A stretch of 64,000 nucleotides of DNA from Macrostomum lignano (lineage: Eukaryota): positions 15,262 through 79,261 of the forward strand of contig NIVC01003744.1 of NCBI GenBank assembly GCA_002269645.1, given 5' to 3'. Below are positions 3,786 through 53,352 of the stretch, piece after piece. Within the stretch, counting starts at the first letter, position 1, and every line of letters starts with the position of its first letter. The position numbers and the translations under genes were made by a program. The notes beneath the pieces are model-generated. The model ran no database searches. It was given only the letters and a program-made list of their open reading frames with translations, and was not told the origin of the DNA.

Positions 3786-4537
3786 TGAAATGGCATGGGG
3801 CTCGGTCTCACTACACACTGAAATGGCATGGGGCTCGGTCTCACTGCACACTGAAATGGCACGGGGCTCGGTCTCACTGCACACTGAAATGGCACGGGGC
3901 TCGGTCTCACTGCACACTGAAATGGCACGGGGCTCGGTCTCACTGCACACTGAAATGGCACGGGGCTCGGTCTCACTGCACACTGAAATGGCATGGGGCT
4001 CGGTCTCACTGCACACTGAAATGGCACTGGGCTCGGTCTCACTGCACACTGAAATGGCACGGGGCTCGGTCTCACTGCACACTGAAATGGCACTGGGCTC
4101 GGTCTCACTGCACACTGAAATGGCATGGGGCTCGGTCTCACTGCACACTGAAATGGCACTGGGCTCGGTCTCACTGCACACTGAAATGGCACGGGGCTCG
4201 GTCTCACTGCACACTGAAATGGCACGGGGCTCGGTCTCACTGCACACTGAAATGGCACGGGGCTCGGTCTGACTGCACACTGAAATGGCACGGGGCTCGG
4301 TCTCACTGCACACTGAAATGGCATGGGGCTCGGTCTCACTACACACTGAAATGGCGGGGCTCGGTCTCACTACACACTGAAATGGCACGGGGCTCGGTCT
4401 CACTGCACACTGAAATGGCACTGGGCTCGGTCTCACTACACACTGAAATGGCGGGGCTCGGTCTCACTGCACACTGAAATGGCACGGGGCTCGGTCTCAC
4501 TGCACACTGAAATGGCATGGGGCTCGGTCTCACTGCA
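3786..4537. repeat. 33-bp minisatellite (AAATGGCACGGGGCTCGGTCTCACTGCACACTG), about 23 copies
   Basis: Direct tandem repeat; explains the 11-aa periodic ORFs (MARGSVSLHTE etc.). Confidence 0.97.
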
Positions 4538-5542
4538 AACTGCGGCTCGCACAGCCCATAGTGCAGCTGCGGGTAATAAAACTGGAAAAAGCTGCTCAAA
4601 AAAAAAGCAAGCAGTTGAGCTGGTGTAGCGAGACCCGAAGTCTTGCTTTTTTGAGCTCTACTGTGAGGCTGCGAGCCCCCCAGTTCGCTACATCAGTTAA
4701 CATACTGTGCGAAAGGCAGCGTGAAGCAGAAAATCGTGGGTAGAAACTCCCCAGAATTTCTTTGTTGCAGTCGAGTTCGGTCTCTGGTGAAAGTTTTTTG
4801 TGCTCGAGTCCAAGTTCCGAGCTCCGACTTGTGGGCAGTTTTTGAAAATTGACTCAGCCGAGCAGGCCACAGGCAAATCTGACTGCAATTCATTTCCCAT
4901 GTCCCATGCATTTTAGCTAGTAGGAATAATGCAGTTGTTTAACCTGCAGCTGGCAATGGGAGCCACTCCCGCTGTTCCCAGGGGCCTGTGTCAATACCGC
5001 TGGGTTTTTATTTTATGTCAAACTTTGTTGTAAGCGGCGGGTCGCTGCCGCAGCCGCTGCGGGTCGATGACGGGTCACTGGAGTCGGTTACGTAATCAAG
5101 TGGTTTCAAGTGATCTGGGGGAGCTCAGATCCGCGCAGGTCGATACAGATTCACGCGCTCTCCGTCCGGGCTGGTGAAGTGGGATGGGGGAGCGATGAAG
5201 GACAGCTGCATCTGGGATTCCGGGATATGCGCGCATCCGCGAGCAGAGAAGATGGAGGAGGCAACTGCGGGAGGCTGGCAAAGTGAGGAGACAGCCGGGG
5301 GTACAGAGAGAGCTGCTACTCCATCCCAAAGTGCCTACACAATGCAGCTGATTGCTTGCAGCTGGCACGGCGGATTGTAGCTTTCTGGATGGCGCCAGGA
5401 CTGATCAGCGAGGTTTTGATACCCCTGACAACTAGTCTGGCGCTCCTGACACCTGCTGAGCATTGCTCAGGGCAGAAATGTCAGGGCAGTCTTTACCATT
5501 GAATTGTACTGATGGTAAACTCCCAGCCTATGCTCCACGAAT

Positions 5543-5992
5543 ATTATGAAGTTTAGTCACGGGAACGGCTCTTTGAAAATGACTCTTGATCGATTATGAA
5601 GTTTAGTCACGGGAACGGTTCTTTGAAAATGACTCTTAATCGATTATGAAGTTTAGTCACGGGAACGGCTCTTTGAAAATGACTCTTAATCGATTATGAA
5701 GTTTAGTCACGGGAACGGTTCTTTGAAAATGACTCTTAATCGATTATGAAGTTTAGTCACGGGAACGGCTCTTTGAAAATGACTCTTAATCGATTATGAA
5801 GTTTAGTCACGGGAACGGTTCTTTGAAAATGACTCTTAATCGATTATGAAGTTTAGTCACGGGAACGGCTCTTTGAAAATGACTCTTAATCGATTATGAA
5901 GTTTAGTCACGGGAACGGCTCTTTGAAAATGACTCTTAATCGATTATGAAGTTTAGTCACGGGAACGGCTCTTTGAAAATGACTCTTAATCG
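5543..5992. repeat. 50-bp tandem repeat, 9 near-identical copies
   Basis: attatgaagtttagtcacgggaacggYtctttgaaaatgactcttaatcg starts at 5543, 5593 ... 5943; no spacers between units. Confidence 0.97.
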
Positions 5993-6727
5993 ACCGATCT
6001 GAGCAGACAGTGGAACAGTTTTGTTAGAAAATCTCCCAGTTGGCCTTCGAGTGGCCCATTGACTCAAAAGTGGACCCGCGGACTCAAATATTATCGTTAG
6101 CTAAGCAGGGGCGGGCGGGAGCACTGACTCACAATTGTGCAGCCGTTATCTTCCCAATGTCCCCCACCCAGCCCTGCCAAAGCACTCCAGGCAACCCCGG
6201 CAGGTCGATGGACTCGAGGCGAGGAGGCATTCAAGGGGAGTTTTTGACGGTCGCAAAGCCTGAGCAGGGAGAGCAAGGACTCATGCAGCCCTGTTGAGAG
6301 GCTGAGTACTGCCATATAGTGAGGGAGATTCACGCCTGACTTGAGTCCGCCTCTGAATGGCTGAGCGTTACTGAGGCGCACCTGATCAATTATTAAACAT
6401 GGCCGGGACAGCGGAGCTGCAGCTGCAATCAGGATGGGGACTGCGGGAGGGGGACGGTGATGACTGATGATGCGGCGGCTGCTGTGGCGCAAATTGGCTG
6501 GCGGACGGCTACCATTTTTTTATTTAATCTGCGCCTAAAACCTAATCTGTTAAATTATGTCAAAAATCTTCACAGTCATGTTTGGAATTTTTCACCTGCT
6601 GGGGAAAAAATTATTGACCCTGACCTGCTGGCGGGATGAGTCATAAAACTGTGGACGGAATAGCCTGAGACAGAAATGAATCCTGAGTGCATAGGAGCGT
6701 GGATAGATGCTAGGATAGAATTATAAA

Positions 6728-7313
<586 letters not shown>

Positions 7314-10782: not shown

Positions 10783-11466
10783 CATGTTCCAATCCCTGCT
10801 CATGCGCCAATCCCTGCTCATGCTCCAATCCCTGCTCATGCTCCAATCCCTGCTCATGCTCCAATCCCTGCTCATGCTCCAATCCCTGCTCATGCTCCAA
10901 TCCCTGCTCACGCTCCAATCCCTGCTCATGCTCCAATCCCTGCTCATGCTCCAATCCCTGCTCATGCTCCAATCCCTGCTCATGCTCCAATCCCTGCTCA
11001 TGCTCCAATCACTGCTCATGCTCCAATCCCTGCTCATGCTCCAATCCCTGCTCATGCTCCAATCCCTGCTCATGCTCCAATCTCTGATCATGCTCCAATC
11101 CCTGGTTATGCTCCAATCCCTGCTCATGCTCCAATCCCTGCTCACGCTCCTCTCCCTGCTCACGCTCCAATCCCTGCTCATGCTCCAATCCCTGCTCATG
11201 CTCCAATCCCTACTCATGCTCCAATCCCTACTCATGCTCCAATCCCTGCTCATGCTCCAATCCCTGCTCATGCTCCAATCCCTGCTCATGCTCCAATCCC
11301 TGCTCATGCTCCAATCCCTGGTTATGCTCCAATCCCTGCTCATGCTCCAATCCCTACTCATGCTCCAATCCCTACTCATGCTCCAATCCCTACTCATGCT
11401 CCAATCCCTGCTCACGCTACAATCCCTGCTCACGCTCCTCTCCCTGCCCACGCTACAATCCCTGCT
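10783..11466. repeat. 18-bp minisatellite (CCAATCCCTGCTCATGCT), about 38 copies
   Basis: Tandem repeat; generates the spurious PIPAHA / LEHEQG / SRDWSM ORFs. Confidence 0.97.
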
Positions 11467-14175: not shown

Positions 14176-14914
14176 CTTGGTGCAAGGACCACTAGGAACA
14201 CTTCGTTATTGTTTAGTAGTCCTTGTATCGAGTCTTAAACCATCTCACCCTAAACCCTAAAATCGAATGACAGATTTTCATTAGCTTTCAACAAGCGTTA
14301 AGTCGCCTGTAAAATCTTGCATCTCATGGGCTGATTATTGTTGAAGAATTTTCATGCGCCATGCAAACTAAGATTCTAAGTAGCTTTGTGGAACAAAAAA
14401 TCAATTAAACAATAGGGAGGCGAGATGGGTAAGCGAATACCCTAAGAATATCCTAGGATATGCCTTGTGCGGCGCTAAACCCAACTCCTCACTCCTCGCG
14501 TTTGTTGATCTCAAGCCATAATGGCTCACAGGCAAAGGACCCAGCTCACTTCTAATGTTGGAGCACAGGCTCCTACTCCTACTTAAAACAGGGGACTGCT
14601 GCAGTCCCTGCCAGTTAGAGCCTCTCTGCTGAGTTTGGCTTGCCTTTCTCGCCTTTCAATTGTCAGTTTTTTTCTAGCTTCTCCGAAACTACTTGGAATC
14701 TATAGCAGCTCCTGGCTTTTGTCTTTCGCACATTGTTCCCAGGGAGCTCGCTTGAGAACGCAGTGCCGTTCCGCTACAGTGACTGCTGCAGCATCCCCAT
14801 GCGGCTCAAAGCCTCTTTAACTCAACTTTTTAGAATGAGATAAAAAGGAGTCAAGCAGAGACGATCTGGTCGGCTTACTTTGAGCAGCAGTTCGCCACCC
14901 AAAACAGTCTGAAA

Positions 14915-15697
14915 ATGTACCTCTCAGGCCCTCTGCTGATGCTGCTGTGCGCTCGGCTCTGCTGGGCTGCTGAGTTCGTCTTTGTCGGCTGCTACAGGGA
15001 TTTCACGGGTGGCGCCAGGGACCTCGGCGGACTGGACGGCATGTCCTCCATCGGGCCCTACGCGGTAGCTGCAAAAGGCGTGAACAGGGCCGACATGACG
15101 CTGCAGCTGTGCAGCCAGATCTGCGAGCTAGGCAACTTCAAGTACTTCGGTGCGCAATACAGCAGCCACTGCTTCTGTGGAAACTCGTACGGCAGTCAGG
15201 GCGGTGCTCCAGTGAGCGACTGCAACATGAACTGCGCTGGCAACGCTAGCCAGATCTGCGGCTCGGGAAGCCGAAATTCGGTTTACCAGAACTTTTACCT
15301 CCGTCCAAGTGAGCAGCGGCAACTATTGTGGCTGAGGGATTTGATGGATTTGATGGGTTTGGATGAATTCGGATGGACCCACTTGTGGCCATTTTAGTCT
15401 TCTTTGTTTCCCTAAGCCAAACATTGATAATCAACTGCACTGAACTGCGTTTTGCTCATTGCAGTCGGCAACAAATTCGTCGAAACTCCCCGCGTCTACC
15501 TGAACCCGACCTCATCTGGCGGGCCCTTCTACAGCACCTTGCAGCCGGCCAGAAGCCTCATCGACTGCCTGCTGAGTTGCGACGCGAGCTGCCAGGCTGT
15601 CCTGTTCCACCTGGACACCTGCTACCTGCTGAAACTGCCGGCTCTGCCGCAGGAGCTGGTCGGCTTTGATGGTGGGAAGTTCGTTGTCCGTGGCTAG
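14915..15697 (+). CDS. Secreted WSC-domain + PAN/apple-like protein, 2 exons (14915-15308, 15465-15697), about 208 aa
   Basis: Signal peptide; WSC motifs FVGCYRD...MTLQLCSQIC...YFGAQYSSHCFCGN...CNMNCAGNASQICG. Donor A|gtgagc and acceptor ttgcag| share phase 1. Exon 2 has DCLLSCDASCQAVLF...TCYL (PAN-like). Confidence 0.88.
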
Positions 15698-19325: not shown

Positions 19326-19510
19326 TTGATTGACAATTGCGCCTGGCAAGTTGAACAGGTTAGACAGGTACTTAGATTGCTCCGCATTCGTAGGTAGTTT
19401 GTTGAGGAAACAAGTGGTTTAAAAGTGTAGACCGACAGGTAGTTGAATGAGTAGGCATGTAGTATGATGGATAAATTGGTTTGGTAGGTTTGATGGGTAA
19501 TGGTAGTTTA

Positions 19511-19808
19511 ATTGGTAGACAGGTAGTTTAGTAGGTAGACAGGTAGTTCAGTGGGTAGACAGGTAGTTCAATGGGTAGACAGGTAGTTCAATGGGTAGAC
19601 AGGTAGTTCAGTGGGTAGACAGGTAGTTCAGTGGGTAGACAGGTAGTTCAGTGGGTAGACAGGTAGTTCAATGGGTAGACAGGTAGTTCAGTGGGTAGAC
19701 AGGTAGTTTAATGGGTAGACAGGTAGTTCAGTGGGTAGACAGGTAGTTTAGAGGGTAGACAGGTAGTTTAATGGATAGACAGGTAGTTTAGTGGGTAGAC
19801 AGGTAGGT
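19511..19808. repeat. 20-bp minisatellite (GGTAGACAGGTAGTTCA[A/G]TG), about 14 copies
   Basis: Tandem copies just downstream of the GSKIP stop. Confidence 0.93.
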
Positions 19809-30847: not shown

Positions 30848-31144
<297 letters not shown>

Positions 31145-31845: not shown

Positions 31846-32623
31846 TCTTCTTATTATTATTCTTCTTATTCTTCTTCTTCTTCTTCTTCTTCTTCTTCTT
31901 CTTCTTCTTCTTCGGGCGCGCTCGGGCCAGGGCCCATGGCACCGGCGTCAGACGGCGCCCGCCTTCCCGAGGAAGTTCAACACCGCGACGCAGTTCTCGA
32001 AAACTGCCGCGGGCTCCGGGCTTGGTCCCCAGAGGCGGCAGCGGTGTGGAGTCAGGGCGGGGCAGGAGATCAGCAGATGGGCCGCCGTCTCCTTTCCATC
32101 GCCACAGAAGCGGCAGGTGGGGGCCACGTCAACGCCGATGGCGGCCTGGAAGCCCCGCAGGGCCGGGCAGCGGTCGGCGCGCAGCTGGCAGATCAGCCGC
32201 TCCTGCCGCCGCGTGAGGTCATTCGTCGGCGGAGGCGGCAGGCGGCCCGCCGTGCAGGCAAGGTGCCAGACCAGCGAGCTCGTGCTCGCCGCCTCGGTGG
32301 CCGCCGCGTTGTAGGTCTGGTGCCAGCGGGCGAGGCAGTGGCGGCGGACGGCAGCCTGCGCGGCAGCCAACGGCACGGGCGCGGTGCCTTGCGCCAGCGT
32401 GGAGCCTCGCTTGACGATCTCGTCCACGGCCTCGTTGCCGGGGATTCCCGCGTGGCCAGGCACCCACTGCAGGTGGACCGAGGTTTTCCGGGCCGCGAGG
32501 TCGGCGAGGCTGGCCCAGACGGCGTCGATCATGGTGGCGCCCGTCGACCCAGGGCCGGACGCGAGCGCGCTGAGCGCGCTCAGGGAGTCAGAGCAGATGC
32601 GGACCGGCGACAGCTCTGCCGGG
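31846..32623 (-). mobile_element. 5'-truncated non-LTR retrotransposon (RNase H-bearing, I/Nimb/Ingi-like group) with (GAA)n tail
   Basis: ORF end has non-LTR RNase H motifs (ICSDSLSAL, LQWVPGHAGIPGNEAVD) and a CCHC knuckle (CRFCGDGKETAAHLLISCP). (TTC)n tail at 31846-31912. 14-bp TSD TCCGTGGCTTCCCT at 31832-31845 and 32624-32637. Confidence 0.93.
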
Positions 32624-32904
32624 TCCGTGGCTTCCCTCGGTGCATGTAACAATTGGCCTTCAATCACGTTTGCACGGGTAGGTAGGTCATAGTGACTGCT
32701 CAGGTGAGCGGGTCAGTTGCCGGTGTGACAGGCTTTTTCAAAAAGAAGTAGAGCAGCAATGAGAAGGCGTTGAAGAGGATAACGAAGGCGGAAGAAAAGA
32801 TGCAGATGGGTGCATGGCGGAGAAGGTTGCAGAGGAGGCAAGAGAATAGGCTCACTGTGACGTTCTTCACGTGTCCAAGAGTGAGGTATTCAAGAGCTAT
32901 TTTT

Positions 32905-33470
32905 GAGTGTGACAAATTCGAGAGTGACTTATTCGAGAGTGACATATTCGAGAGTGACATATGCGAGAGTAACTTATTCGTGAGTGACATATTCGAAAGT
33001 GATATTTTCAAGAGTGTTGATTTTTTCGAAAGTGACATATTCGAGAGTGATATATTCGAGAGTGACATATTCGAGAGTGACATATTCGAGAGTGATATAT
33101 TCGAGAGTGACATATTCGAGAGTGACATATTCGAGAGTGATATATTCGAGAGTGACATATTCGAGAGTGACATATTCGAGAGTGACATATTCGAGAGTGA
33201 CATATTCGAGAGTGACATATTCGAGAGTGACATATTCGAGAGTGACATATTCGAGAGTGACATATTCGAGAGTGACATATTCGAGAGTGACATATTCGAG
33301 AGTGACATATTCGAGAGTGACATATTCGAGAGTGACATATTCGAGAGTGACATATTCGAGAGTGACATATTCGAGAGTGACATATTCGAGAGTGACATAT
33401 TCGAGAGTGACATATTCGAGAGTGACATATTCGAGAGTGACATATTCGAAAGTGACATATTCGAGAGTGA
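32905..33470. repeat. 15-bp minisatellite (GAGAGTGACATATTC), about 37 copies
   Basis: Tandem repeat; source of the ESDIF / YSRVT / SLSNM ORFs. Confidence 0.97.
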
Positions 33471-36142: not shown

Positions 36143-37340
36143 CCGGCGGCAACAGCGGCATCTGCGGCGGCAACAGCGGCGGCAACAGCGGCGGCAACAG
36201 CGGCGGCAACAGCGGCGGCAACAGCGGCGGCAACAGCGGCGGATACAGCGGCAACAGCGGCAACAGCGGCGGATACAGTGGCAACAGCGGCAACAGCGGC
36301 GGATACAGCGGCAACAGCGGCAACAGCGGCGGCTGCGGCGGCTGCGGCGGCAACAGCGGCGGCAACAGCGGCAACAGCGGCAACAGCGGCGGCAACAGCG
36401 GCAACAGCGGCAACAGCGGCGGCAACAGCGGCGGCAACAGCGGCGGCAACAGCGGCGGCAACAGCGGCGGCAACAGCGGCGGCAACAGCAGCGGCAACAG
36501 CGGCGGCAACAGCGGCGGCAACAGCGGCGGATACAGCGGCAACAGCGGCAACAGCGGCGGCTGCGGCGGCTGCGGCGGCAACAGCGGCGGCAACAGCGGC
36601 AACAGCGGCAACAGCGGCGGCAACAGCGGCAACAGCGGCAACAGCGGCGGCAACAGCGGCGGCAACAGCGGCGGCAACAGCGGCGGCAACAGCGGCGGCA
36701 ACAGCAGCGGCAACAGCGGCGGCAACAGCGGCGGCAACAGCGGCGGCAACAGCGGCGGATACAGCGGCAACAGCGGCAACAGCGGCGGCTGCGGCGGCTG
36801 CGGCGGCAACAGCGGCGGCAACAGCGGCAACAGCGGCGGCAACAGCGGCAACAGCGGCGGATACAGCGGCAACAGCGGCAACAGCGGCGGCTGCGGCGGC
36901 TGCGGCGGCAACAGCGGCGGATACAGCGGCGGATACAGCGGCAACAGCGGCAACAGCGGCGGCTGCGGCGGCTGCGGCGGCAACAGCGGCGGATACAGCG
37001 GCAACAGCGGCAACAGCGGCGGCTGCGGCGGCTGCGGCGGCAACAGCGGCGGCAACAGCGGCAACAGCGGCGGATACAGCGGCAACAGCGGCGGATACAG
37101 CGGCAACAGCGGCAACAGCGGCAACAGCGGCAACAGCGGCAACAGCGGCGGATACAGCGCCGGCTTCGGCGGCAATAGCGGCGGATACAGCGGCGGATAC
37201 AGCGGCGGCTTCGGCGGCAACAGCGGCAACAGCGGCGGCTGCGGCGGCAACAGCGGCGGATACAGCGGCGGCTGCGGCGGACACAGCGGCGGACACAGCG
37301 GTGGATACAGCGGCAACAGCTGCGGCTGCGGCGACAACAA
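36143..37340. repeat. GC-rich triplet-based low-complexity array (GGC/AAC/AGC/TAC) with higher-order blocks
   Basis: Units such as ggcggcaacagc, ggatacagc and ggctgc; stop-free in several frames purely because of composition. Confidence 0.9.
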
Positions 37341-37344
37341 CGGC

Positions 37345-39480
37345 CGCAACACCGACACACTGGTGACAGCAGTGGGGAGGTGGGAGGACCTGTCGGCGGC
37401 GTCGGTGTCATCGGCGTGGTAAGAATCAGTTTGCTCCTCTGTGTCTCCGAGTTTCTGTTTTCACTTCAATTATTCAGCAAGCTCCTGTCTGTGGTTCTAT
37501 CGTCTTATCGAATACAGGCGGCAACTGCAGCGGCGATGGCAGCAGCAGCGGCAAAAGCGGCGGCAACAGCGGCGACGGCGGCAACAGCGGCGACGTCGGC
37601 AACAGCGGCGGCAACACCGACACACTGGTGACAGCAGTGGGGAGGATATTTTTTGGCGGCGTTGGTGTCCTCGGCGTGCAGTGGTAAGAATCAGTTTGCT
37701 CCTTTGTCTCTGATTCTCTCTTTGTACCCCAATTATTCAGCAAGCTCTTTCTGTGGATCTATCGTCTTATCGAATACAGGATGCAATAGCGGCGGCAGTG
37801 GTGGAGGCTACAGCGGCGGCAACACCGACACACTGGTGACAGCAGTGGGGAGGTGGGAGGACCTGTCGGCGGCGTCGATGTCATCGGCGTGGTAAGAATC
37901 AGTTTGCTCCTTTGTGCTCTGATTTTCTGTTTGTAACTTCAATTATTCGGCAAGCTCTGTCACTGACTCAATCGTCTTTTCGAATGCAGGCGGCAACAGC
38001 GGCGGACACAGCGGCGGACACAGCGCGGACACAGCGGCGGACACAGTGGCGGACACAGCGGCGGACACAGCGGCGGACACAGCGGCGGACACAGCGGCGG
38101 CAACAGCTGCGGCAACAGCTGCGGCTGCGGCGGCGGCAACAACGGCCGCAACACCGACACACTGGTGACAGCAGTGGGGAGGTGGGAGGACCTGTCGGCG
38201 GCGTCGGTGTCATCGGCGTGGTAAGAATCAGTTTGCTTCTCTGTGTCTCCGAGTTTCTGTTTTCACTTCAATTATTCAGCAAGCTCTTGTCTGTGGTTCT
38301 ATCGTCTTATCGAATACAGGCGGTAACTGCGGCGGCGATGGCAGCAGCAGCGGCAAAAGCGGCGGCAACAACGGCGGCGGCGGCCAAGGCGGCGGTGGCC
38401 ACAACAGCGGTGGCGGCGGAATCGGCAACAGCGGCGGCAACGGTGGCGGCGGCGGCAACAACGGAAGCGGCACGTGTGGCAAGAGCAAGGAACCGTGGAC
38501 CAGTAGCAGAAGGGAATAAATGAGCTTCAGAAGGATGCGCACAGGCCACTCGATCGAATTGGCGGCCTACAGGAAACGAATAGCGCTCCAAGAAGAAAGC
38601 TTGTGCCGGTGTTGCGGCTTGGAAGTAGATACTATGCAGCATGTGTGGGACTGCCCAGTGACGGAGGAAAGGAGGAGGGCGTGGTGCTGCAGCGGCATTC
38701 GGGCGGTTTGTGAGCAACCGGATGAAGCGCTGAAATACTGGGAATGGTGGAAAGGTCACCAGCCGGTGGGGGTGTCATGGTGGAGGCTCCTAGCCGTAGT
38801 TGACTGGTGGTGGTTGGCATCAACAATAACAACAACAATGGCAGTGGCGGCAACAACGGCGGCAGCGGCAACAACGGCGGCAACACCGACTGACTGGCGA
38901 CAGCAGTGGGGAGGTGGGAGGACCTGTCGGCGGCGTCGGTGTCATTGGCGTGGTAAGAATCCGGTTGCTCTTTTGTGTCTCCGAGTTGATCTTACCACTC
39001 CAACCATTCAGCAAGCTCTTGTCTGCGGCTCTATTGTCTTATCGAATACAGGCGGCGATTGCAGCATCAGTGGCAACAGCGGCGGCGGCGGCAACAGCGG
39101 CGGGGGCGGCAACACTGACAGACTGGTGACAGCAGTGGGGAGGTGGGAGGACCTGTCGGCGGCGTCGGTGTCATTGGCGTGGTAAGAATCCGGTTGCTCT
39201 TTTGTGTCTCCGAGTTGATCTTACCACTCCAACCATTCAGCAAGCTCTTGTCTGCGGCTCTATTGTCTTATCGAATACAGGCGGCGATTGCAGCATCAGT
39301 GGCAACAGCGGCGGCGGCGGCAACAGCGGCGGGGGCGGCAACACTGACAGACTGGTGACAGCAGTGGGGAGGTGGGAGGATCTGTCGGTGGCGTCGGTGT
39401 CATCGGCGTGGTAAGAATCAGTTTGCTTCTTTGTGTCTCTGATTCTCTCTTTGTACCCCAATTATTCAGCAAGCTCTTGC
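37345..39480. repeat. Seven copies of a composite unit of about 230-330 bp (triplet tract + constant GC tail + T-rich segment)
   Basis: gtg|gtaagaatc at 37419, 37684, 37892, 38221, 38953, 39182 and 39411; two adjacent units are an identical 229-bp tandem duplication (identical ORFs 38914 and 39143). Confidence 0.88.
38472..38765 (+). pseudogene. Decayed 3' fragment of a non-LTR retrotransposon ORF2 (RxRTGH + CCHC knuckle)
   Basis: SRRE*MSFRRMRTGHSIELAAYRKRI...CRCCGLEVDTMQHVWDCP...ALKYWEWW, with an in-frame stop upstream. Confidence 0.75.
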
Positions 39481-39895
39481 CTCTGTGGCTCTGTTTGGCT
39501 TCATAGTCCATTAAACTGGTTCGGCGCCTGACGTGACAAAATCAGTGTCTGACTTTTTTAGCCTTCAGCTCTTCACTTAGCTGCAGGACGCATTTCGTGG
39601 ACTTCCTGTGGTTTTGGAAGTCCCCTAGAGAGTCTGCCAGTGTTTTGGGCCCATAGGCCTGGCCCGTTTCATACGTCACTGGCGAGCTGAATACACCTTC
39701 GCGAGCTGGCCGGCAGCTCGGCCCCATAATAGTTTTTCATCTTTTTCATGAGCCGCTACGTTGTATGATTATTTTGATCAGCCAATGACAGAGCGGCACT
39801 GCGACTCTGGTCAAATGCAACCCTACGTGCTCATATTAAGCTTGCCTTCAGATTAAAAAATTTGCGTCTTGCGTCTGCAACATCATCTGAATTCA

Positions 39896-41420: not shown

Positions 41421-42648
41421 CTGAATCGAATTTTTTATTGTGCTGATAATTACACATTAAACTTAGTCAGGATCATTTGTTTACGAGCGTGAGATAAGCA
41501 AAAAGTTGGATTAAAAATATTTTTTCTCCATTCTTCCAATCTCCAAATGGATTGACTTCATCTAGCTCTCCCAGCCTCATAATGCAGCCTCACAGAAATT
41601 ATCTTGTAGCTGTGCGGAGGTTAAAAAACAACTCAATATTTGATGGAGCAATTTTTGTATGGGCTCCACATCAGCCTCTTTAATAATTCATGCCAATATC
41701 TACCATCCGTAGCAGGATGAAGTTTCTATATCCGCTTCCAGAGACAACTGCTGTGGGATTTGGGGAGCCTGCAGCGTTCCGCTGAGGCGCTTAAGCTTGA
41801 CGATGGGCCATGCAGAGTCCCCCTCCTGCCCATTTAATCCCAGTTTGATCCCAGTTGATTGATTCTTTTTATGCAGGCAGATATTTATCGACGCATAGCT
41901 GAGACTCACATATAGATGCTGGCTTAAAACAGTTGCCATGCGCGGCAAGTGCATCGAAATTGTTGACAACGTAAATTTGTAGCTGGGGACAGCTTGGCCA
42001 GCACCGGCTAACAAGAGCGACTTTTTTCCGGCTTCTCTTCAGTCTTAAATCCAGTAACAATTTCGCCAATCAGCAGTTCACTTCAATTAGTATGCTCAAC
42101 TATGAGAATTGCGTGTATGAATCAGAAGCAGATCTTGGGGCCCAGTGACCACACGTTAAGGTCCTTGCGAGTCCCTGTGAGTGAGAACTCGTCAAAGTCC
42201 TCTTGCAGCATCTGGAGACATTGGAAAGCATTTTATCGGGATGAAATCATGGCCAGGGCCACCATAGCGCCGCGTAAATGCATTTAAACGATCTGAATGT
42301 GTTCTTTTATTTTACGGTAGATCGACAACAGCAATTTCATGTTAAGTGCTTCCATTCTAAGTAGAAAATAAATAAGGCCTTGAGTTACTTCATCCACTGA
42401 CTCCCCAGCAACAGATTAGTCTACTTTTTTTGCAGATACGCTTGTCAGAACTATTGTTCATTGGCAAGCTGGCACAAGTGGGTGCTGGTATTTTACCCGG
42501 CCCAGCCACTGCGGCCAAACGACCAAACGGCCCCCATGCCTAGCCGACATAATATGAGAGGCTTGTTTCTTATTTTAACATCAAATCTTAATATTTTAAT
42601 GAAAAACAAATGCATGAATTACTATTGCCTCCGTATTTATACCTGTAT

Positions 42649-43028
42649 ATCTTGTACCTGTAGCCGTGCTCCTTGAATTTATATCTTGTACCTGTAGCCG
42701 TGATCCTTGAATTTATATCTTGTACCTGTAGCCGTGATCCTTGAATTTATATCTTGTACCTGTAGCCGTGCTCCTTGAATTTATATCTTGTACCTGTAGC
42801 CGTGCTCCTTGAATTTATATCTTGTACCTGTAGCCGTGATCCTTGAATTTATATCTTGTACCTGTAGCCGTGATCCTTGAATTTATATCTTGTACCTGTA
42901 GCCGTGCTCCTTGAATTTATATCGGTTGTACCTGTAGCCGTGTTCCTTGAATTTATATCTTGTACCTGTAGCCGTGCTCCTTGAATTTATATCTTGTACC
43001 TGTAGCCATGTTTCTGGAATTTATATCT
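42649..43028. repeat. 34-bp minisatellite (TTGTACCTGTAGCCGTG[C/A]TCCTTGAATTTATATC), about 11 copies, at the start of dispersed-repeat copy 2
   Basis: Period 34 (42661 to 42695); a single homologous monomer sits at about 41143-41178. Confidence 0.92.
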
Positions 43029-43853
43029 TCTAAACGAAATATAAACGAAATATTTAAGCCAATAATCCTGAAACTCCTGAATAATGGACTTTACGCAATG
43101 TTTTATGGCAAACAGAAATATAGAATATATCTGATGCTCCTGAGTAGTGTTTATCCTGAGTCAGCAGTCAGGCTGGTGGAGCATAAATGCACCCCAAAGG
43201 ATAAGAAAACTTATCGCTGCATATTGGCAGCAGGATTGCCTGTTCCACCTCATCCGAATCGCTAATTGCCGGTACGGTTGCAGGTGCTAATAAAGATATA
43301 AAGATAACCTGTTTGATTATCTTTATAGCAAACAATTCATTTTTGCAAGTGTTAAAATTTTGGTCAGATTTCAAACTGCCGGCCGTAGGCGGGCATACAG
43401 AACCCAGTCAACAATCAATCAATGACTTTATATTTAATTATGATTATACAGAACTACATAGAGCATATAAGTATGTATGGCTTAGAGAAATATTTCTGCC
43501 CAGTAATCTAAAATTTAAACAAATAGATTTTTAAAAATTAAATAGAAAAATTCAATCGTTTGTTATACTTTCTAAGATAATTTTAAATGCTAACGTGACT
43601 ATAAGTGAATTAATTCATAAATGAAGAATGATATATGAATACGTAATGTTTGATATGATCAATACAAACTACAAAAATAGGACTGCAAAAAAGATTTTTA
43701 AGTACTGAGGTTAGAAAAACAGTCCACACCGCAGTCAAGTCTTATACATGTACTAAATATCAACAAATCAAGTGTGGCTCATACTTGAGTGTCCTACTGG
43801 TCAACGGACTATAAAAATTCAACGTATATTTCGGGGCACCACAGTACACAGCT

Positions 43854-45353: not shown

Positions 45354-46386
<1,033 letters not shown>

Positions 46387-47680
46387 GTTAATGTCTGTGT
46401 GTTTAGTTGGACCTTTCGTCAGTATTTTTCCCTCCTTACATGGACCACCCGTTTTAACTGGACCCCTTACGTGGACCACCATATATATTTCTACATGAAA
46501 TGTTAAACATGTTTTACATAGACCTATGATGGAGTCTAGTAGAAAGCGATCGTGGTCCCTAAAGTTGCTCACTCGAAGTTCTTTTGGTTCCAAGTTACAA
46601 CGGTTTCAGTTTACCTGGACCTTTTACTCGGTCCACCTAAACCGATTTTCGAGGTCCACGTAAATCGAAATTTCACATGACCCATTTTCAAAAACTGTCT
46701 GTTTGGTGTCTGTTTTGTGTCTGTTAGATAAATTGGTAGCTAAATTTGTCGATTTGTTGTAATCGTGAAAACGTTGTTTTTTGCGATAAAATAACAAATT
46801 TGTTAGCAACAATATGTACGAGCGTATAATGGATTTGGGGCTTGGACGACAAAGACGGAACTATTATATGCTATTAATTTCAAGACAATTTTTATAAAAA
46901 ATCACGATATTGCATCACAGCATTGAGTCTCCTCTCCACCTTGAGTTACTAAAAATTCCTTTAAGATCGCAATTGTAAGTGATGCAACTGGCCACCTGTG
47001 CTGCAGGGAACGATGTATTTACACAATCACACACTATGAAGTAATGATTGATAACAGGCTGTTTCGTACGAGCTATATACCTGTATCTTATTATGTCAAA
47101 GCCAAAACGAAAGCCATATTTGTATCGCTATCTTTGAAAGTCGTAGCTTATCCGAACATTTAAGTGTCTTTAACCAAATTCATTGGACGGAAAATGCAGA
47201 GTACATCGTGTGATTGGACTAAGTGAGCCGCTCTTATGCTTAAAGGAGCCTCACACTCCTTGAAAGATAGCGGCCTTCAGTGGTTCCCCTAAAACGATGT
47301 CCTGTAGCACAGACTAATCTCTACCCCCTTATTTTAGCATGACTGCTTGTCTCATTGTACACAGCAATGAACACTAGTTGTTTGCTTTTTATTAAAACAG
47401 CTGATGTCGGGAGATAAGAATTCTAGAATTTTCTGTTTCAAGACTGTACAGTGTGAATAGACACTGGCCAACCAGTGGGGTTTCTCAATGGGCACTGTAC
47501 ATTTGCCAGCCACAGAATCTCGCTAACCAATAGGAAAAGGTCTAATGAAATTGGCGTGGGGTTGCTTGCCTATAGAAGCCTCGCAATCAGGTCCATTTAA
47601 ACCCAGACTTACTAAGACCAGAGTTTATTTAGGCCCCGTTGCAATTGCAACTGCAAGTATATAGGAAGAATATCCTGTAG

Positions 47681-50600
47681 AAAACGGCCAAAATATTTTA
47701 CTTCGAAAGGATTGAGAAGTGCTGCAAAAAGAAGTTTTTTATAAAGTGGACTGGCTATCCCAGGTAAGAAAATTTTCAAAAAGAATTACTTCTAATTCTA
47801 AATAATATTTTACTTAACTTGTAAAAAATTTAAGGCTTTACTGCTTTTCATTTTTAACATGCTTTGTAGGAGTAAAAACACATGGGAGCCGAAAAAAATA
47901 TCCCCGAGAACATACTAAAGGCTCTGCACTCTGAGTGCGGTAAGCTATCCTCTACAGTCAATATCAATAGCAAACAATAGCACATTTGCATCAACAACTT
48001 ATACAGTATTACATTATTTTATACATTTCAGGCAAGTGCTTCCCTAGAACAAAAGCTAAGGAAAAGTCAGTAGGTTTTGTTGTAACGTGTTATTAAAATT
48101 TCTGGTTTTTGCGCTTTACTTAAACTATGAACAAATATTGTGGACACAATTCTCCTTTACGTTTTTCTTTGATTCGAAATTCCTATACAGCTACAAAATG
48201 ATTAGCTTCATACTCGTGCTTCAAAGTAAACAAACAGTAATTGATTAGGGTCCAGCTAACACACCGTGACACCAACAGACAGACGCAGTCAGTTTAAGAT
48301 GGTGGCCCGATCTGGGGTCCAGCTAACACACCGTGACACCAACAGACAGACGCAGTCAGTTTAAGATGGTGGCCCGATCTGGGGTCCAGCTAACACACCG
48401 TGACACCAACAGACAGACGCAGTCAGTTTAAGATGGTGCCCCGACCTGGGGTCCAGCTAACACACCGTGACACCAACAGACAGACGCAGTCAGTTTAAGA
48501 TGGTGCCCCGACCTGGGGTCCAGCTAACACACCGTGACACCAACAGACAGACGCAGTCAGTTTAAGATGGTGCCCCGACCTGGGGTCCAGCTAACACACC
48601 GTGACACCAACAGACAGACGCAGTCAGTGTAAGATGGTGCCCCGATCTGGGGTCCAGCTAACACACCGTGACACCAACAGACAGACGCAGTCAGTTTAAG
48701 ATGGTGGCCCGATCTGGGGTCCAGCTAACACACCGTGACACCAACAGACAGACGCAGTCAGTTTAAGATAGTGCCCCGACCTGGGGTCCAGCTAACACAC
48801 CGTGACACCAACAGACAGACGCAGTCAGTTTAAGATAGTGCCCCGACCTGGGGTCCAGCTAACACACCGTGACACCAACAGACAGACGCAGTCAGTGTAA
48901 GATGGTGCCCCGATCTGGGGTCCAGCTAACACACCGTGACACCAACAGACAGACGCAGTCAGTTTAAGATGGTGGCCCGATCTGGGGTCCAGCTAACACA
49001 CCGTGACACCAACAGACAGACGCAGTCAGTGTAAGATGGTGCCCTGATCTGGGGTCCAGTCCAGCTAACACACCGTGACACCAACAGACAGACGCAGTCA
49101 GTTTAAGATGGTGCCCTGATCTGGGGTCCAGCTAACACACCGTGACACCAACAGACAGACGCAGTCAGTTTAAGATGGTGGCCCGATCTGGGGTCCAGCT
49201 AACACACCGTGACACCAACAGACAGAAGCAGTCAGTTTAAGATGGTGGCCCGATCTGGGGTCCAGCTAACACACCGTGACACCAACAGACAGACGCAGTC
49301 AGTGTAAGATGGTGGCCCGATCTGGGGTCCAGCTAACACACCGTGACACCAACAGACAGACGCAGTCAGTTTAAGATGGTGCCCTGATCTGGGGTCCAGC
49401 TAACACACCGTGACACCAACAGACAGACGCAGTCAGTTTAAGATGGTGCCCTGATCTGGGGTCCAGCTAACACACCGTGACACCAACGGACAGACGCAGT
49501 CAGTTTAAGATGGTGGCCCGATCTGGGGTCCAGCTAACACACCATGACGTGAGACTGACAACTAGAGACAGACACAAAAAGTCTAGCCAACTTACAAAAT
49601 ATTAGTTCGCAATTAGAGCTTTCGTTTTAACGGAAGGAATTTTTAATATACACACCAAGCAGCAAGACTCAACCAGTCAGTCTTCTCAGCTGCAACAAGA
49701 CACGGCCAGTCAGCAGAAGCAGCAACAGAACCCGGCCACTCAGTCTCCTCAGCCGCATCAAGACACGGCCAGTCAGCAGAAGCCGCATCAAAACTCGGCC
49801 AGTCAGCAGAAGCCGCATCAAGACTCGGCCAGTCAGCAGAAGCCGCATCAAGACTCGGCCAGTCAGCAGAAGCCGCATCAAAACTCGGCCAGTCACTCTC
49901 CTCAGCTGCAGCAGAACTCGGCCAATAAGTCAAAGAAGCAACGTCGCTCGACCAGTCAGCAGAAGCAGCATCAAGACTCGGCCATTCAGCAGAAGCAGCA
50001 TCAAGACTCGGCCAGTTTTTCTCCAGAGCAGCACGAATCGGCCAAGAGAGCTCGAAACAAGTCCAGATCGGTCAAGAGGAAAGGAAGCAAGCAGTCCCGA
50101 TGTGGAAGTGCTGACTCGTGTGAAGCTGGCTCCTCTCATCAAGCCGCTGCTAAAGGCAACTCTTCTGCTGTAAGTACTTTGTTGCGTTGCACTTTTACGC
50201 CTTTGTTCATAACTGCACTGCAACTCGCACAATTATTTCTCCTAACAGTGTTTGAATTTAAAGAAGACAGTCTTAGATTTTGCCCTTATCTAAGGTCCAG
50301 CTAACACACCGTGACACCAACAGACAGACGCAGTCAGTTTAAGATGGTGGCCCGATCTGGGGTCCAGCTAACACACTGTGACACCAACAGACAGACGCAG
50401 TCAGTTTAAGATGGTGGCCCGATCTGGGGTCCAGCTAACACACCGTGACACCAACAGACAGACGCAGTCAGTTTAAGATGGTGGCCCGACCTGGGGTCCA
50501 GCTAACACACCGTGACACCAACAGACAGACGCAGTCAGTTTAAGATGGTGGCCCGATCTGGGGTCCAGCTAACACACCGTGACACCAACAGACAGAAGCA

Positions 50601-51804
50601 GTCAGTTTAAGATGGTGCCCCGACCTGGGGTCCAGCTAACACACCGTGACACCAACAGACAGAAGCAGTCAGTTTAAGATGGTGCCCCGATCTGGGGTCC
50701 AGCTAACACACCGTGACACCAACAGACAGACGCAGTCAGTGTAAGATGGTGCCCTGATCTGGGGTCCAGCTTATAAGCTCTCATTCTCAGACTCTCTTAA
50801 GGTCCGATATTCCGCCAGTTCTGATTATCTCTTTAAAATAAATTGAAATGTAGTGCCTGTGAATAGTATAAGAATTTTTCCCTTTTGTTTTGTTTTGTAT
50901 GTTTTTAGTGGTACTTACATTTTAGGCAGTCGACAGCAGAAACGAGTTTTCAACGAATTGGTTTCAAGACAAAAAGTTTTTTCGCATATCCAAAGGCACC
51001 AACCGTGATCGGCTATGTGAAGAAGGCGTGAAGTATTTTGGTGGCACTATTGCTTCGTTTTTTTCAAATCAGGTAAGCGACTTTAGTATTTGTTTTTGTC
51101 GAAGTTAGTTTTGGTAGTAAACGTTAAGTTGTTTTTTAGTTCTATTGTTGGTATCAATTTAAGTGAGCGTATTCGAGCGTATCTTTTAACGCTTCTTAAT
51201 CCTAATGATAGAACAATTTGATTGCATTTTCCTGAACGTTATACAAGTATTTTATGTAATTTAATTAATTTCATAGGTGGACTTCGTCGTCTCAATTTCA
51301 ACACCTGCGAACTGTTCGGAAATGTCCATTTCGAACATATCGGCAACAGTGCAGTTGCCACGGGGATGTGCGATGCAAAAAATGGCTACCGCAGCCAGTG
51401 CATATTCTGGCTTTTGCTCTGCCGATGACGATGTTGCAGAAACAAGGCTCCTCGGAATTCCAAATATCAGTCTACTAGAGGTTCGAGACTATTTACGTGA
51501 CCGCGGCTATATTGCTAGTCGAGCCGACTCAGCTAATGCGGCAGGATCATTTGCATTAAATCACGGCAAAATCCTGTCTGGAACAGCAGTTGTTATTGGG
51601 GATGCAAGCCGTCGGGGTGGACCAATTTTTTCTGAAAATCTACAAGTGTTCGACTATTTTACTAATCCGGATTTATACGGCCTTCGAGAATCCAAGGAGC
51701 AGGATCAACGAATCCTGGAAAAAAATTTCAATGTTTTGTGTTTCTTTAAAATTGTTTCCTTTACGTTAAATCGATTATTTCCAATTGCCTCCGTCTGTGT
51801 TTAA
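47681..51804 (+). CDS. Spliced gene inside the TIR element: chromodomain + Q/S/K-rich linker + Dbf4-like BRCT (motif N) and motif-M-like region. Exons 47681-47763, 47870-47939, 48032-48069, 49660-50169, 50926-51072, 51277-51804; start exon not found
   Basis: GT-AG junctions are phase-consistent once one A is restored at 47892-47898. Chromo motif FYFERIEKCCKKKFFIKWTGYP-RSKNTWEP. BRCT-like FQDKKFFRISK...EEGVKYFGGTIASFFSNQVDFVVS, then QLPRGCAMQKMA, VAETRLLGIPNISLLEVRDYL and AVVIGDASRRGGPIF. Confidence 0.7.
48248..49548. repeat. 67-bp tandem array, about 19 copies, intronic; unit contains the element-terminus motif GGTCCAGCTAACACAC
   Basis: Period 67 (48251, 48318, 48385); unit ggggtccagctaacacaccgtgacaccaacagacagacgcagtcagtttaagatggtggcccgatct. 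Confidence 0.97.
50294..50770. repeat. Second array of the same 67-bp unit, about 7 copies, intronic
   Basis: Same unit as 48248-49548, in the next intron. Confidence 0.97.
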
Positions 51805-52096
51805 CCTTAGCTGTCAGTGTTAGGTTTACGCTAAATTTGGTCTATGATTTTGAATCGGTGTGAAGGTCCACCTAAAACACGTTCTGTCGGTGTCCATATA
51901 AACCGGTCCAGTTTAAGTAATAAAAATACTGGTGCAATTTCCACTAATGAGAGCCTCTGTCAGCTTCAAAAGTAAACAAACTTTTGAAGATCTTTCGTGA
52001 ACTAAAAAAAGGCTCTATTAAAAGTAAAAAAGTCGGTGGTCCATGTAATGCATTAAAACTTCTGAGGTCCAGCTAAACACACAGACACTTGTATGT

Positions 52097-53352
<1,256 letters not shown>

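Follow-up and report, generated by a model that had tools for sequence, protein, structure and literature searches.

The DNA considered here is a stretch of 64,000 nucleotides from Macrostomum lignano (assembly GCA_002269645.1, contig NIVC01003744.1, positions 15,262 to 79,261 of the forward strand), referred to below as the window. It contains a predicted gene of six exons on the plus strand, encoding a chromodomain, a repetitive linker and a region homologous to Dbf4, the activating subunit of the kinase Cdc7 (together the Dbf4-dependent kinase, DDK). The gene lies inside a 5.7-kb unit (46392-52087) with inverted termini of about 65 bp, and the coordinates of all features are collected in Table 1. 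An original prediction, made from the letters of the stretch alone, had proposed a chromodomain fused to the Dbf4 motifs N and M and carried inside a terminal inverted repeat (TIR) element. The architecture, as read from the sequence, is real and unusual; the expression of the gene and the mobility of the unit are unproven.

The predicted chromodomain-Dbf4 gene

When the splice sites and phases were re-derived from the sequence, the six phase-consistent exons of the original prediction were recovered, with the one homopolymer correction that it had called for and with canonical splice sites throughout. The donors read, in order, gtaaga, gtaagc, gtaggt, gtaagt and gtaagc; GTAAG, the donor consensus of M. 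lignano (PMC8629364), thus occurs in four of the five and GTAGG in the fifth, and all acceptors end in AG. The in-phase donors account for four of just 13 GT[AG]AG sequences that the plus strand of the 5.7-kb unit contains. The six exons form a single frame only if the run of seven A residues at 47892-47898 is read as eight. Similarity to SUV39H1 and HP1 runs on past this run in the shifted frame (WEPKKNIPENILKALHSE compared with WEPRQNLKCVRILKQFHKD), which justifies the correction from A7 to A8 and indicates that the lesion is either an assembly error or recent.

Exon 1 begins at a candidate acceptor for the spliced leader (SL). In M. lignano the SL is 35 nt long and ends in ...TTGCATG, with about 30% of genes being trans-spliced (PMC8629364). 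Trans-splicing at 47681 would yield M-KTAKIFYFERIEK in frame, with the AUG of the SL presumably acting as the start codon, and the objection that a start is missing would be removed by an AUG supplied in this way. Use of the SL AUG as initiator has reportedly been described in flatworms. An isolated GGTCCATTTAA motif is present at 47590-47600, about 90 bp 5' of the exon 1 acceptor, in the presumed outron or promoter region.

The product of exons 1-3 matches the Pfam chromodomain family PF00385 with 35.9 bits (cut-off 25.1, E=7e-9), and the domain named in the original prediction is thereby identified. Its closest solved relatives are SUV39H1 (8e-7) and Drosophila HP1 (3e-6), within a range of 8e-7 to 6e-6 for SUV39H1 and HP1 sequences; LHP1, CBX3, Chp1 and Rhino are further ones, and 52 chromodomain sequences of the PDB were matched at E<=0.1. 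Judged by sequence, these relatives are the branch of chromodomains that reads methylated lysine 9 of histone H3 (H3K9). By inspection of the alignment, all three aromatic-cage positions are present (F/Y in FYFERI, W in IKW and Y in GYP), and the domain is a putative methyl-lysine reader. Its first hairpin (strands 1-2) is about four residues shorter than that of the HP1/SUV39H1 type, and no close chromodomain parent gene was found in a protein search with the N-terminal half. The repetitive Q/S/K linker, likewise foreseen, corresponds to a tandem repeat of 10 codons in exon 4 detected with Tandem Repeats Finder (TRF). Two of the three frames of this exon are open, and its open reading frame (ORF) alone is therefore weak coding evidence.

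A second copy of the gene is known as the UniProt model A0A1I8HLP1. Exon 4 is present in it, and it differs from the window in the number of linker repeats and in several substitutions. Given the redundancy of the assembly, this copy may be a homeologue or polyploid duplicate rather than a transposed copy.

The Dbf4-like half of the protein was compared with 1.84 billion representative sequences in an exhaustive phmmer search with exons 5-6. Exactly three matches were obtained, all of them DBF4-type proteins of M. lignano and all across residues 13-188 of the query: A0A1I8JFC0 (1.8e-13), A0A1I8HXN8 (2.9e-13) and PAA77783 (6e-10). The matched span comprises the motif N and motif M regions of these proteins, and motif N of the window gene is recognised by its homology to the former. 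Identity to the paralogues amounts to 29-35% in the alignments and to 40% with PAA77783 over the matched stretches, and 35 alignment columns, the motif cores included, are invariant among them. The segments singled out in the original prediction, FFRI...GG.IASFFSNQVDFVVS, RG..MQK.A, LLGIP...VRDYL and AVVIGDA....GPIF, turn out to be exactly the blocks conserved among the three paralogues. A block of the form AVV.xDAxxxxxPIFxxNxxVxDxFxNP is common to the window gene, A0A1I8HXN8 and PAA77783. In exon 6, the candidate for motif M is the block AVVIGDASRRGGPIF...VFDYF, tentatively equated with it by position and by conservation among the Macrostomum paralogues. Against the PDB, a full-length profile of this M. 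lignano protein family matched yeast Dbf4 (3.7e-6) and human DBF4 chains (1.7e-5), in both cases through motif C only, and the motif N part of this profile aligned to residues 140-183 of yeast Dbf4, inside its BRCT-like motif N, with a conditional E of 0.001. The single exon 5-6 sequence and an N-M profile gave no Dbf4 match in the PDB, the only hit being the BRCT domain of XRCC1 (E=0.04).

The intron between exons 5 and 6, which falls in phase 0 between FFSNQ and VD, occupies the same codon and phase as the sole intron of the PAA77783 gene, between FFSKQ and VD. The shared position implies descent by duplication at the DNA level and lends independent support to the exon 5/6 junction. Word-indexed searches with the C-terminal half, the N-M profile and the N-terminal half gave only A0A1I8HLP1, A0A1I8JFC0 and A0A1I8HXN8, and neither an intact annotated orthologue nor another protein combining a chromodomain with Dbf4 was found in them.

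Motif C, the CCHH zinc finger of the Dbf4 family (zf-DBF, PF07535), is present in A0A1I8HXN8 and PAA77783 (E=6.5e-16 and 4.2e-12), about 20-60 residues past the matched region and the shared block. The original prediction had noted that it is absent before the stop of the window gene; it is also absent from all six frames of the window, as searched by tblastn with the host proteins. A zf-DBF hidden Markov model built from four species gave a best E of 0.26 in the six frames, at an unrelated site, and a search for zinc-finger remnants in other frames 3' of motif M returned nothing significant. Past the motif M block the ORF continues for 26 residues without counterpart before its stop, and no consensus donor was found 3' of motif M. 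Host Dbf4 genes with motif C exist separately, represented by A0A1I8HXN8 and, on NCBI contigs, by PAA77783 and PAA74425, as the original prediction had required if it was to hold. That the locus is the host Dbf4 itself, present in single copy and with its motif C in an exon further downstream, is ruled out, since the motif is carried by these separate genes and none lies within 12 kb downstream. Between the host paralogues, identity is only about 30%, and the window gene is therefore regarded as a third old lineage, not as a recent copy of either.

At one host Dbf4 locus (L001, contig NIVC01000723.1), no upstream chromodomain, no DNA similarity to the 5.7-kb unit and none of its motifs were found. 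The PAA77783 gene of this locus (BOX15_Mlig017237g1) has no ATG of its own (L001 9986-10003), and its ORF is open back to a TTGCAG trans-splice acceptor, in frame with the SL AUG; the 'partial' status of PAA77783 in GenBank may be an annotation artefact of SL-donated initiation. A0A1I8JFC0 and A0A1I8HXN8 are identical in the Dbf4 N and M region, which is followed by the zinc finger in the latter and by unrelated sequence in the former. From their sequences, the two would either be alternative gene models or point to a second natural form of Dbf4 that lacks motif C.

The 5.7-kb unit and its surroundings

Over 70 bp, the segments 46392-46459 and 52087-52023 match in inverted orientation at 76% (E=1e-6). 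A 23-bp tip is near-perfect and a 14-bp inner block perfect in this pairing, and both occur only at the two ends. Of the 17-mer tip, the window has exactly two copies, inverted relative to each other, where 0.02 would be expected. For the motif GGTCCANNTAA the count in the window is 37 (0.41 expected), and all copies lie within 46403-52076: the left end has five, on the minus strand, and the right end three, on the plus strand, while three more are internal and 26 belong to a 67-bp satellite that occupies parts of introns 3 and 4. Terminal inverted repeats and subterminal motifs inverted between the ends, as known from TIR transposons, are thus both present. The satellite unit resembles the TIR tip together with its (CAGA)n junction (score 32, shuffle maximum 25).

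Both flanks of the unit are formed by arrays of the same tetranucleotide in the same orientation, from which it follows that one direct (TCTG)n array was interrupted, as expected of one insertion. An origin of these microsatellites by outgrowth from the TIR tips was ruled out, because the arrays share one orientation and outgrowth from inverted tips would have given opposite ones. By its structure, the 5.7-kb unit is most simply interpreted as a non-autonomous TIR transposon or a remnant of one, the term 'element' in the sense of mobile being unproven.

Table 1. Positions of the predicted exons, of the parts of the 5.7-kb unit and of other features in the window.
Feature	Position	Strand	Description
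Exon 1	47681-47763	+	Chromodomain strand 1, KTAKIFYFERIEKCCKKKFFIKWTGYP; phase 0 start directly after cctgTAG; without ATG; candidate spliced-leader acceptor
Exon 2	47870-47939	+	Remaining chromodomain, RSKNTWEPKK/NIPENILKALHSEC; A7 run 47892-47898 breaks the frame unless A8
Exon 3	48032-48069	+	38 nt, GKCFPRTKAKEKS
Exon 4	49660-50169 (alternative acceptor 49663)	+	Q/S/K-rich linker, 30-bp (10-aa) repeats, basic hinge-like end
Exon 5	50926-51072	+	First half of Dbf4 motif N / BRCT-like, KKFFRI...GGTIASFFSNQ; homologous to exon 1 of the PAA77783 gene
Exon 6	51277-51804	+	Motif N remainder VDFVVS...LLGIPNISLLEVRDYL, candidate motif M region GTAVVIGDASRRGGPIFSENLQVFDYFTNP, 26-aa non-homologous tail, stop TAA; without zinc finger
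Left terminal inverted repeat	46392-46459	+	Tip GTGTCTGTGTGTTTAGTTGGACC ... TTACATGGACCACC
Right terminal inverted repeat	52023-52087	-	Tip GGTCCAGCTAAACACACAGACAC
Left subterminal GGTCCANNTAA cluster	46403-46663	5 minus, 2 plus	Minus 46403-46621; plus 46630, 46653
Right subterminal GGTCCANNTAA motifs	51865, 52038, 52066	+	
67-bp satellite, intron 3	48248-49548	+	19 copies (TRF)
67-bp satellite, intron 4	50294-50771	+	7 copies (TRF)
Left flank (TCTG)n microsatellite	45354-46386		About 260 copies (TRF)
Right flank (TGTC)n microsatellite	52090-53349		About 316 copies; same repeat and orientation as left flank (TRF)
PARP catalytic domain PF00644	43857-44759	-	E=7e-29, 301-aa open frame; just upstream of the left (TCTG)n array
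RNase H + zf-RVT open frame	31951-32712	-	E=2e-8 and E=1e-3; adjoins 15-bp tandem array 32905-33470
WSC domain	14834-15394	+	E=3e-15
SH3_10 domain	61340-62017	-	E=2e-6
GDSL lipase	63563-64000	+	E=1e-8; runs off the window
350-aa ORF	55756-56805	-	Weak Pfam matches only (best E=2e-4), read as coiled-coil-like

Elsewhere in the window, which is rich in tandem repeats, the open frame with RNase H and zf-RVT matches is probably a fragment of a non-LTR retrotransposon. The PARP, WSC, SH3_10 and GDSL lipase frames and the 350-aa ORF are of host type. The TCTG/ACAG tetranucleotide forms four long arrays (6729-7313, 30848-31144, 45354-46386 and 52090-53349), only the latter two of which border the TIR unit; where the other two end, no TIR tip is present. 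Clearly, this tetranucleotide repeat is widespread in the genome, and it may be a favoured target for insertion. Unrelated minisatellites are located at 3786-4542, 5543-5993, 10783-11466, 19502-19806, 36144-37314, 38876-39492, 42646-43029 and 54313-54668, with periods of 33, 50, 18, 20, 12, 229, 34 and 37 bp, respectively, and 73-99% matches; several of these arrays give rise to long ORFs, on either strand, that are spurious. No hit was obtained when the window was scanned for Rfam families and tRNAs. More than half of the M. lignano genome consists of repeats, and 180 Mb lie in near-identical duplicated blocks (PMC5730564).

A possible tether for Cdc7 and the alternatives

Structural work on DBF4 and CDC7 has assigned separate tasks to the three motifs: motif N is a BRCT-like docking module, motif M is clamped on the CDC7 C lobe, where it brings order to the activation loop, and motif C contacts the N lobe and positions the alpha-C helix, with M and C both being required for activity (PMC7416108). 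The reading tentatively preferred here, although it is given slightly less than an even chance, is that the window gene is a third, old, lineage-specific Dbf4 paralogue of M. lignano, in which a chromodomain and linker stand before the N and M exons and motif C has been lost, inside a TIR-bounded unit, and that its product would tether Cdc7 with little or no activation. The SL would cap the mRNA and bring its terminal AUG into frame with exon 1. In the resulting protein, the chromodomain would bind H3K9-methylated nucleosomes, motif N would offer the usual Dbf4 docking surface and motif M would bind the C lobe of Cdc7. Little or no activation of Cdc7 would be expected because the motif that positions the alpha-C helix is missing, and the kinase would then be held at heterochromatin in a largely inactive state. 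Such a protein would be a tether, a weak co-activator or a local modulator or decoy of DDK, not a full activator. That exons 1-4 and exons 5-6 are joined on one mRNA, and that the gene is intact, is predicted and unproven.

Several observations weigh against this reading. Exon 1 lacks an ATG of its own, and in the assembled frame of exon 2 a TAA stop (47908-47910) follows 9 nt beyond the A7 run, which leaves the chromodomain in an interrupted frame; the run could be an assembly error or a real mutation. The model A0A1I8HLP1, the sole other copy seen, lacks exon 5 and joins exon 4 directly to exon 6, with a frameshift after SISNI. No NCBI gene model was found at the locus, the GenBank annotation of M. 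lignano having deliberately excluded transcripts that overlap repeats (PMC5730564). Exons 5-6 alone gave no significant match in Pfam or the PDB, the Pfam BRCT family staying below threshold at E=0.14, and an AlphaFold2 model of these exons, computed from a 3-sequence alignment, was not used in view of its predicted local distance difference test of 35 and predicted template modelling score of 0.25. The call of motifs N and M, drawn in the original prediction from motif spacing, is upheld by homology to the M. lignano DBF4-type proteins but not by similarity to the canonical motif M: the block in exon 6 gave no direct match to the motif M of human or yeast, nor to a motif M family of Dbf4 in Pfam. 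Likewise, the inverted termini of the proposed TIR element are real, but the unit contains no transposase ORF, and no clean target-site duplication is visible in its degenerate microsatellite flanks (TGTTAA on the left, TTGTATGTCTA on the right).

These last two points are also what would be expected of an ordinary host gene that was colonised by repeats and never moved, the TIR-like ends being independent insertions or solo ends of the family that seeded the intronic satellite. This is the alternative that survives best, and it is a possibility to be taken seriously, if a doubtful one. The 67-bp satellite shows that TIR-tip sequence has been amplified locally, two motifs at the left end (46630 and 46653) have the opposite orientation, and the neighbours (PARP, SH3 and GDSL lipase) are ordinary host genes; the assembly is, in addition, highly redundant, and the second copy may be a polyploid duplicate. 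It is harder to reconcile with independent insertions that the ends are a matched pair with tips pointing outward, that all 11 non-satellite motifs are confined to the space between them, the other 58 kb having none, and that the two ends together divide one direct (TCTG)n array in the way expected of a single insertion.

A decaying copy is rather unlikely. In this case the locus would be a pseudogene or relic of a once-functional chromodomain-Dbf4 paralogue, or a set of gene pieces taken up by the TIR unit, and would no longer specify a functional protein. The frameshift in exon 2, the missing ATG, the out-of-frame second copy and the want of an NCBI model would all follow from decay, as would the replacement of the zinc finger by a non-homologous tail of 26 residues and the swelling of the introns by the 67-bp satellite. 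Between the two copies, exon 6 shows about four non-synonymous and two synonymous changes (counted from translated differences), a ratio that is not distinguishable from neutrality. Nonetheless, the sole disabling lesion lies in a homopolymer, where errors are typical of long-read assemblies, and the AUG of the SL can account for the lack of an ATG, as in PAA77783. All splice sites are intact, the 175 codons of exon 6 are open (a chance probability of about 2e-4 by our own estimate), and the motif cores have been kept despite an overall identity of about 30-40%.

A division into two genes, in which exons 1-4 would encode a chromodomain protein with a Q/S/K tail and exons 5-6 a short Dbf4 N and M protein, in an operon-like arrangement with SL trans-splicing at exon 5, is improbable. 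In its favour, exon 5 begins in phase 0 right after ttttAG, its homologue in the PAA77783 gene is a first exon with a trans-splice-type acceptor (TTGCAG), an AATAAA lies at 50837 in intron 4, about 85 nt 5' of exon 5, read-through of the exon 4 donor meets a stop at 50302 and operons are credited with about 15% of the genes of M. lignano (PMC8629364). Against it, exon 4 ends in a consensus GTAAGT donor exactly in phase 0, and A0A1I8HLP1, which may be an ab initio model, uses the same sites to connect exon 4 with exon 6.

A far-reaching extension of the tether reading, given very little credence, is that a mobile TIR element expresses its own H3K9me-reading, zinc-finger-less Dbf4, which would bind Cdc7, and MCM via motif N, on methylated chromatin and would control the replication timing or silencing of the element or of heterochromatin in general. 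If true, nature would have an equivalent of the synthetic chromodomain-Dfp1 tether described below, and a regulator of a replication kinase would for the first time have been described as the cargo of a transposon; should the 5.7-kb unit be mobile, it would be an unusual DNA transposon in carrying a chromatin and replication factor. The dropped zinc finger would, in the event that the tether reading is correct, supply a natural Dbf4 that binds without activating, with which the two-step model of Cdc7 activation could be tested. As a stem-cell model that is transgenic and amenable to RNA interference, M. lignano allows the idea to be tested directly. Even as a relic, the locus would document the rapid diversification of the Dbf4 family, with three paralogues about 30% identical, in a hidden-polyploid genome.

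Comparison with known systems

Gene-carrying non-autonomous TIR elements are known from transduplication of the Pack-MULE type. The window unit resembles them in being bounded by TIRs, in lacking a transposase and in containing intron-bearing, host-type exons from two unrelated gene families; it differs in that neither a target-site duplication nor a highly similar parent gene was found, the closest Dbf4 paralogues being 29-40% identical and no close chromodomain parent having appeared. In Foldback/Tetris-like elements, terminal repeats expand into satellites. The internal tandem arrays derived from terminal sequence are a feature in common, whereas in the window these arrays lie in the introns of the gene and not in the termini.

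With the chromodomains of HP1 and SUV39H1, the predicted protein shares the PF00385 family, the aromatic-cage positions and a basic hinge-like stretch downstream. Unlike these proteins, it has a shorter hairpin and neither a chromoshadow nor a SET domain, and its frame is broken in the assembly. Within the Dbf4/ASK/Dfp1/Chiffon family, the order of a BRCT-like motif N followed by a conserved block at the position of motif M is the same, and with the M. lignano DBF4-type relatives it shares one intron position and phase and the probable use of the SL AUG. It departs from the Dbf4 family in lacking motif C and in having an N-terminal chromodomain and repeat linker.

No description of a natural chromodomain-Dbf4 protein was found in the literature, and the nearest precedent is an engineered one. 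In fission yeast, the HP1 protein Swi6 recruits DDK via Dfp1 (PMC5295031), and a fusion of the Swi6 chromodomain to Dfp1 restores the early replication of heterochromatin in swi6-delta cells (Hayashi et al., 2009, as summarised in PMC5295031), an artificial fusion that served as the proof of this recruitment. According to that summary, the yeast construct is artificial and its Dfp1 has motif C and activates Hsk1, whereas the window gene is natural and without motif C. In both, a chromodomain is placed ahead of Dbf4 or Dfp1, an arrangement by which the construct, as summarised there, puts DDK on H3K9-methylated chromatin. A natural gene that hard-wires the link between HP1 and DDK would show that evolution has used the shortcut which the yeast fusion made artificially.

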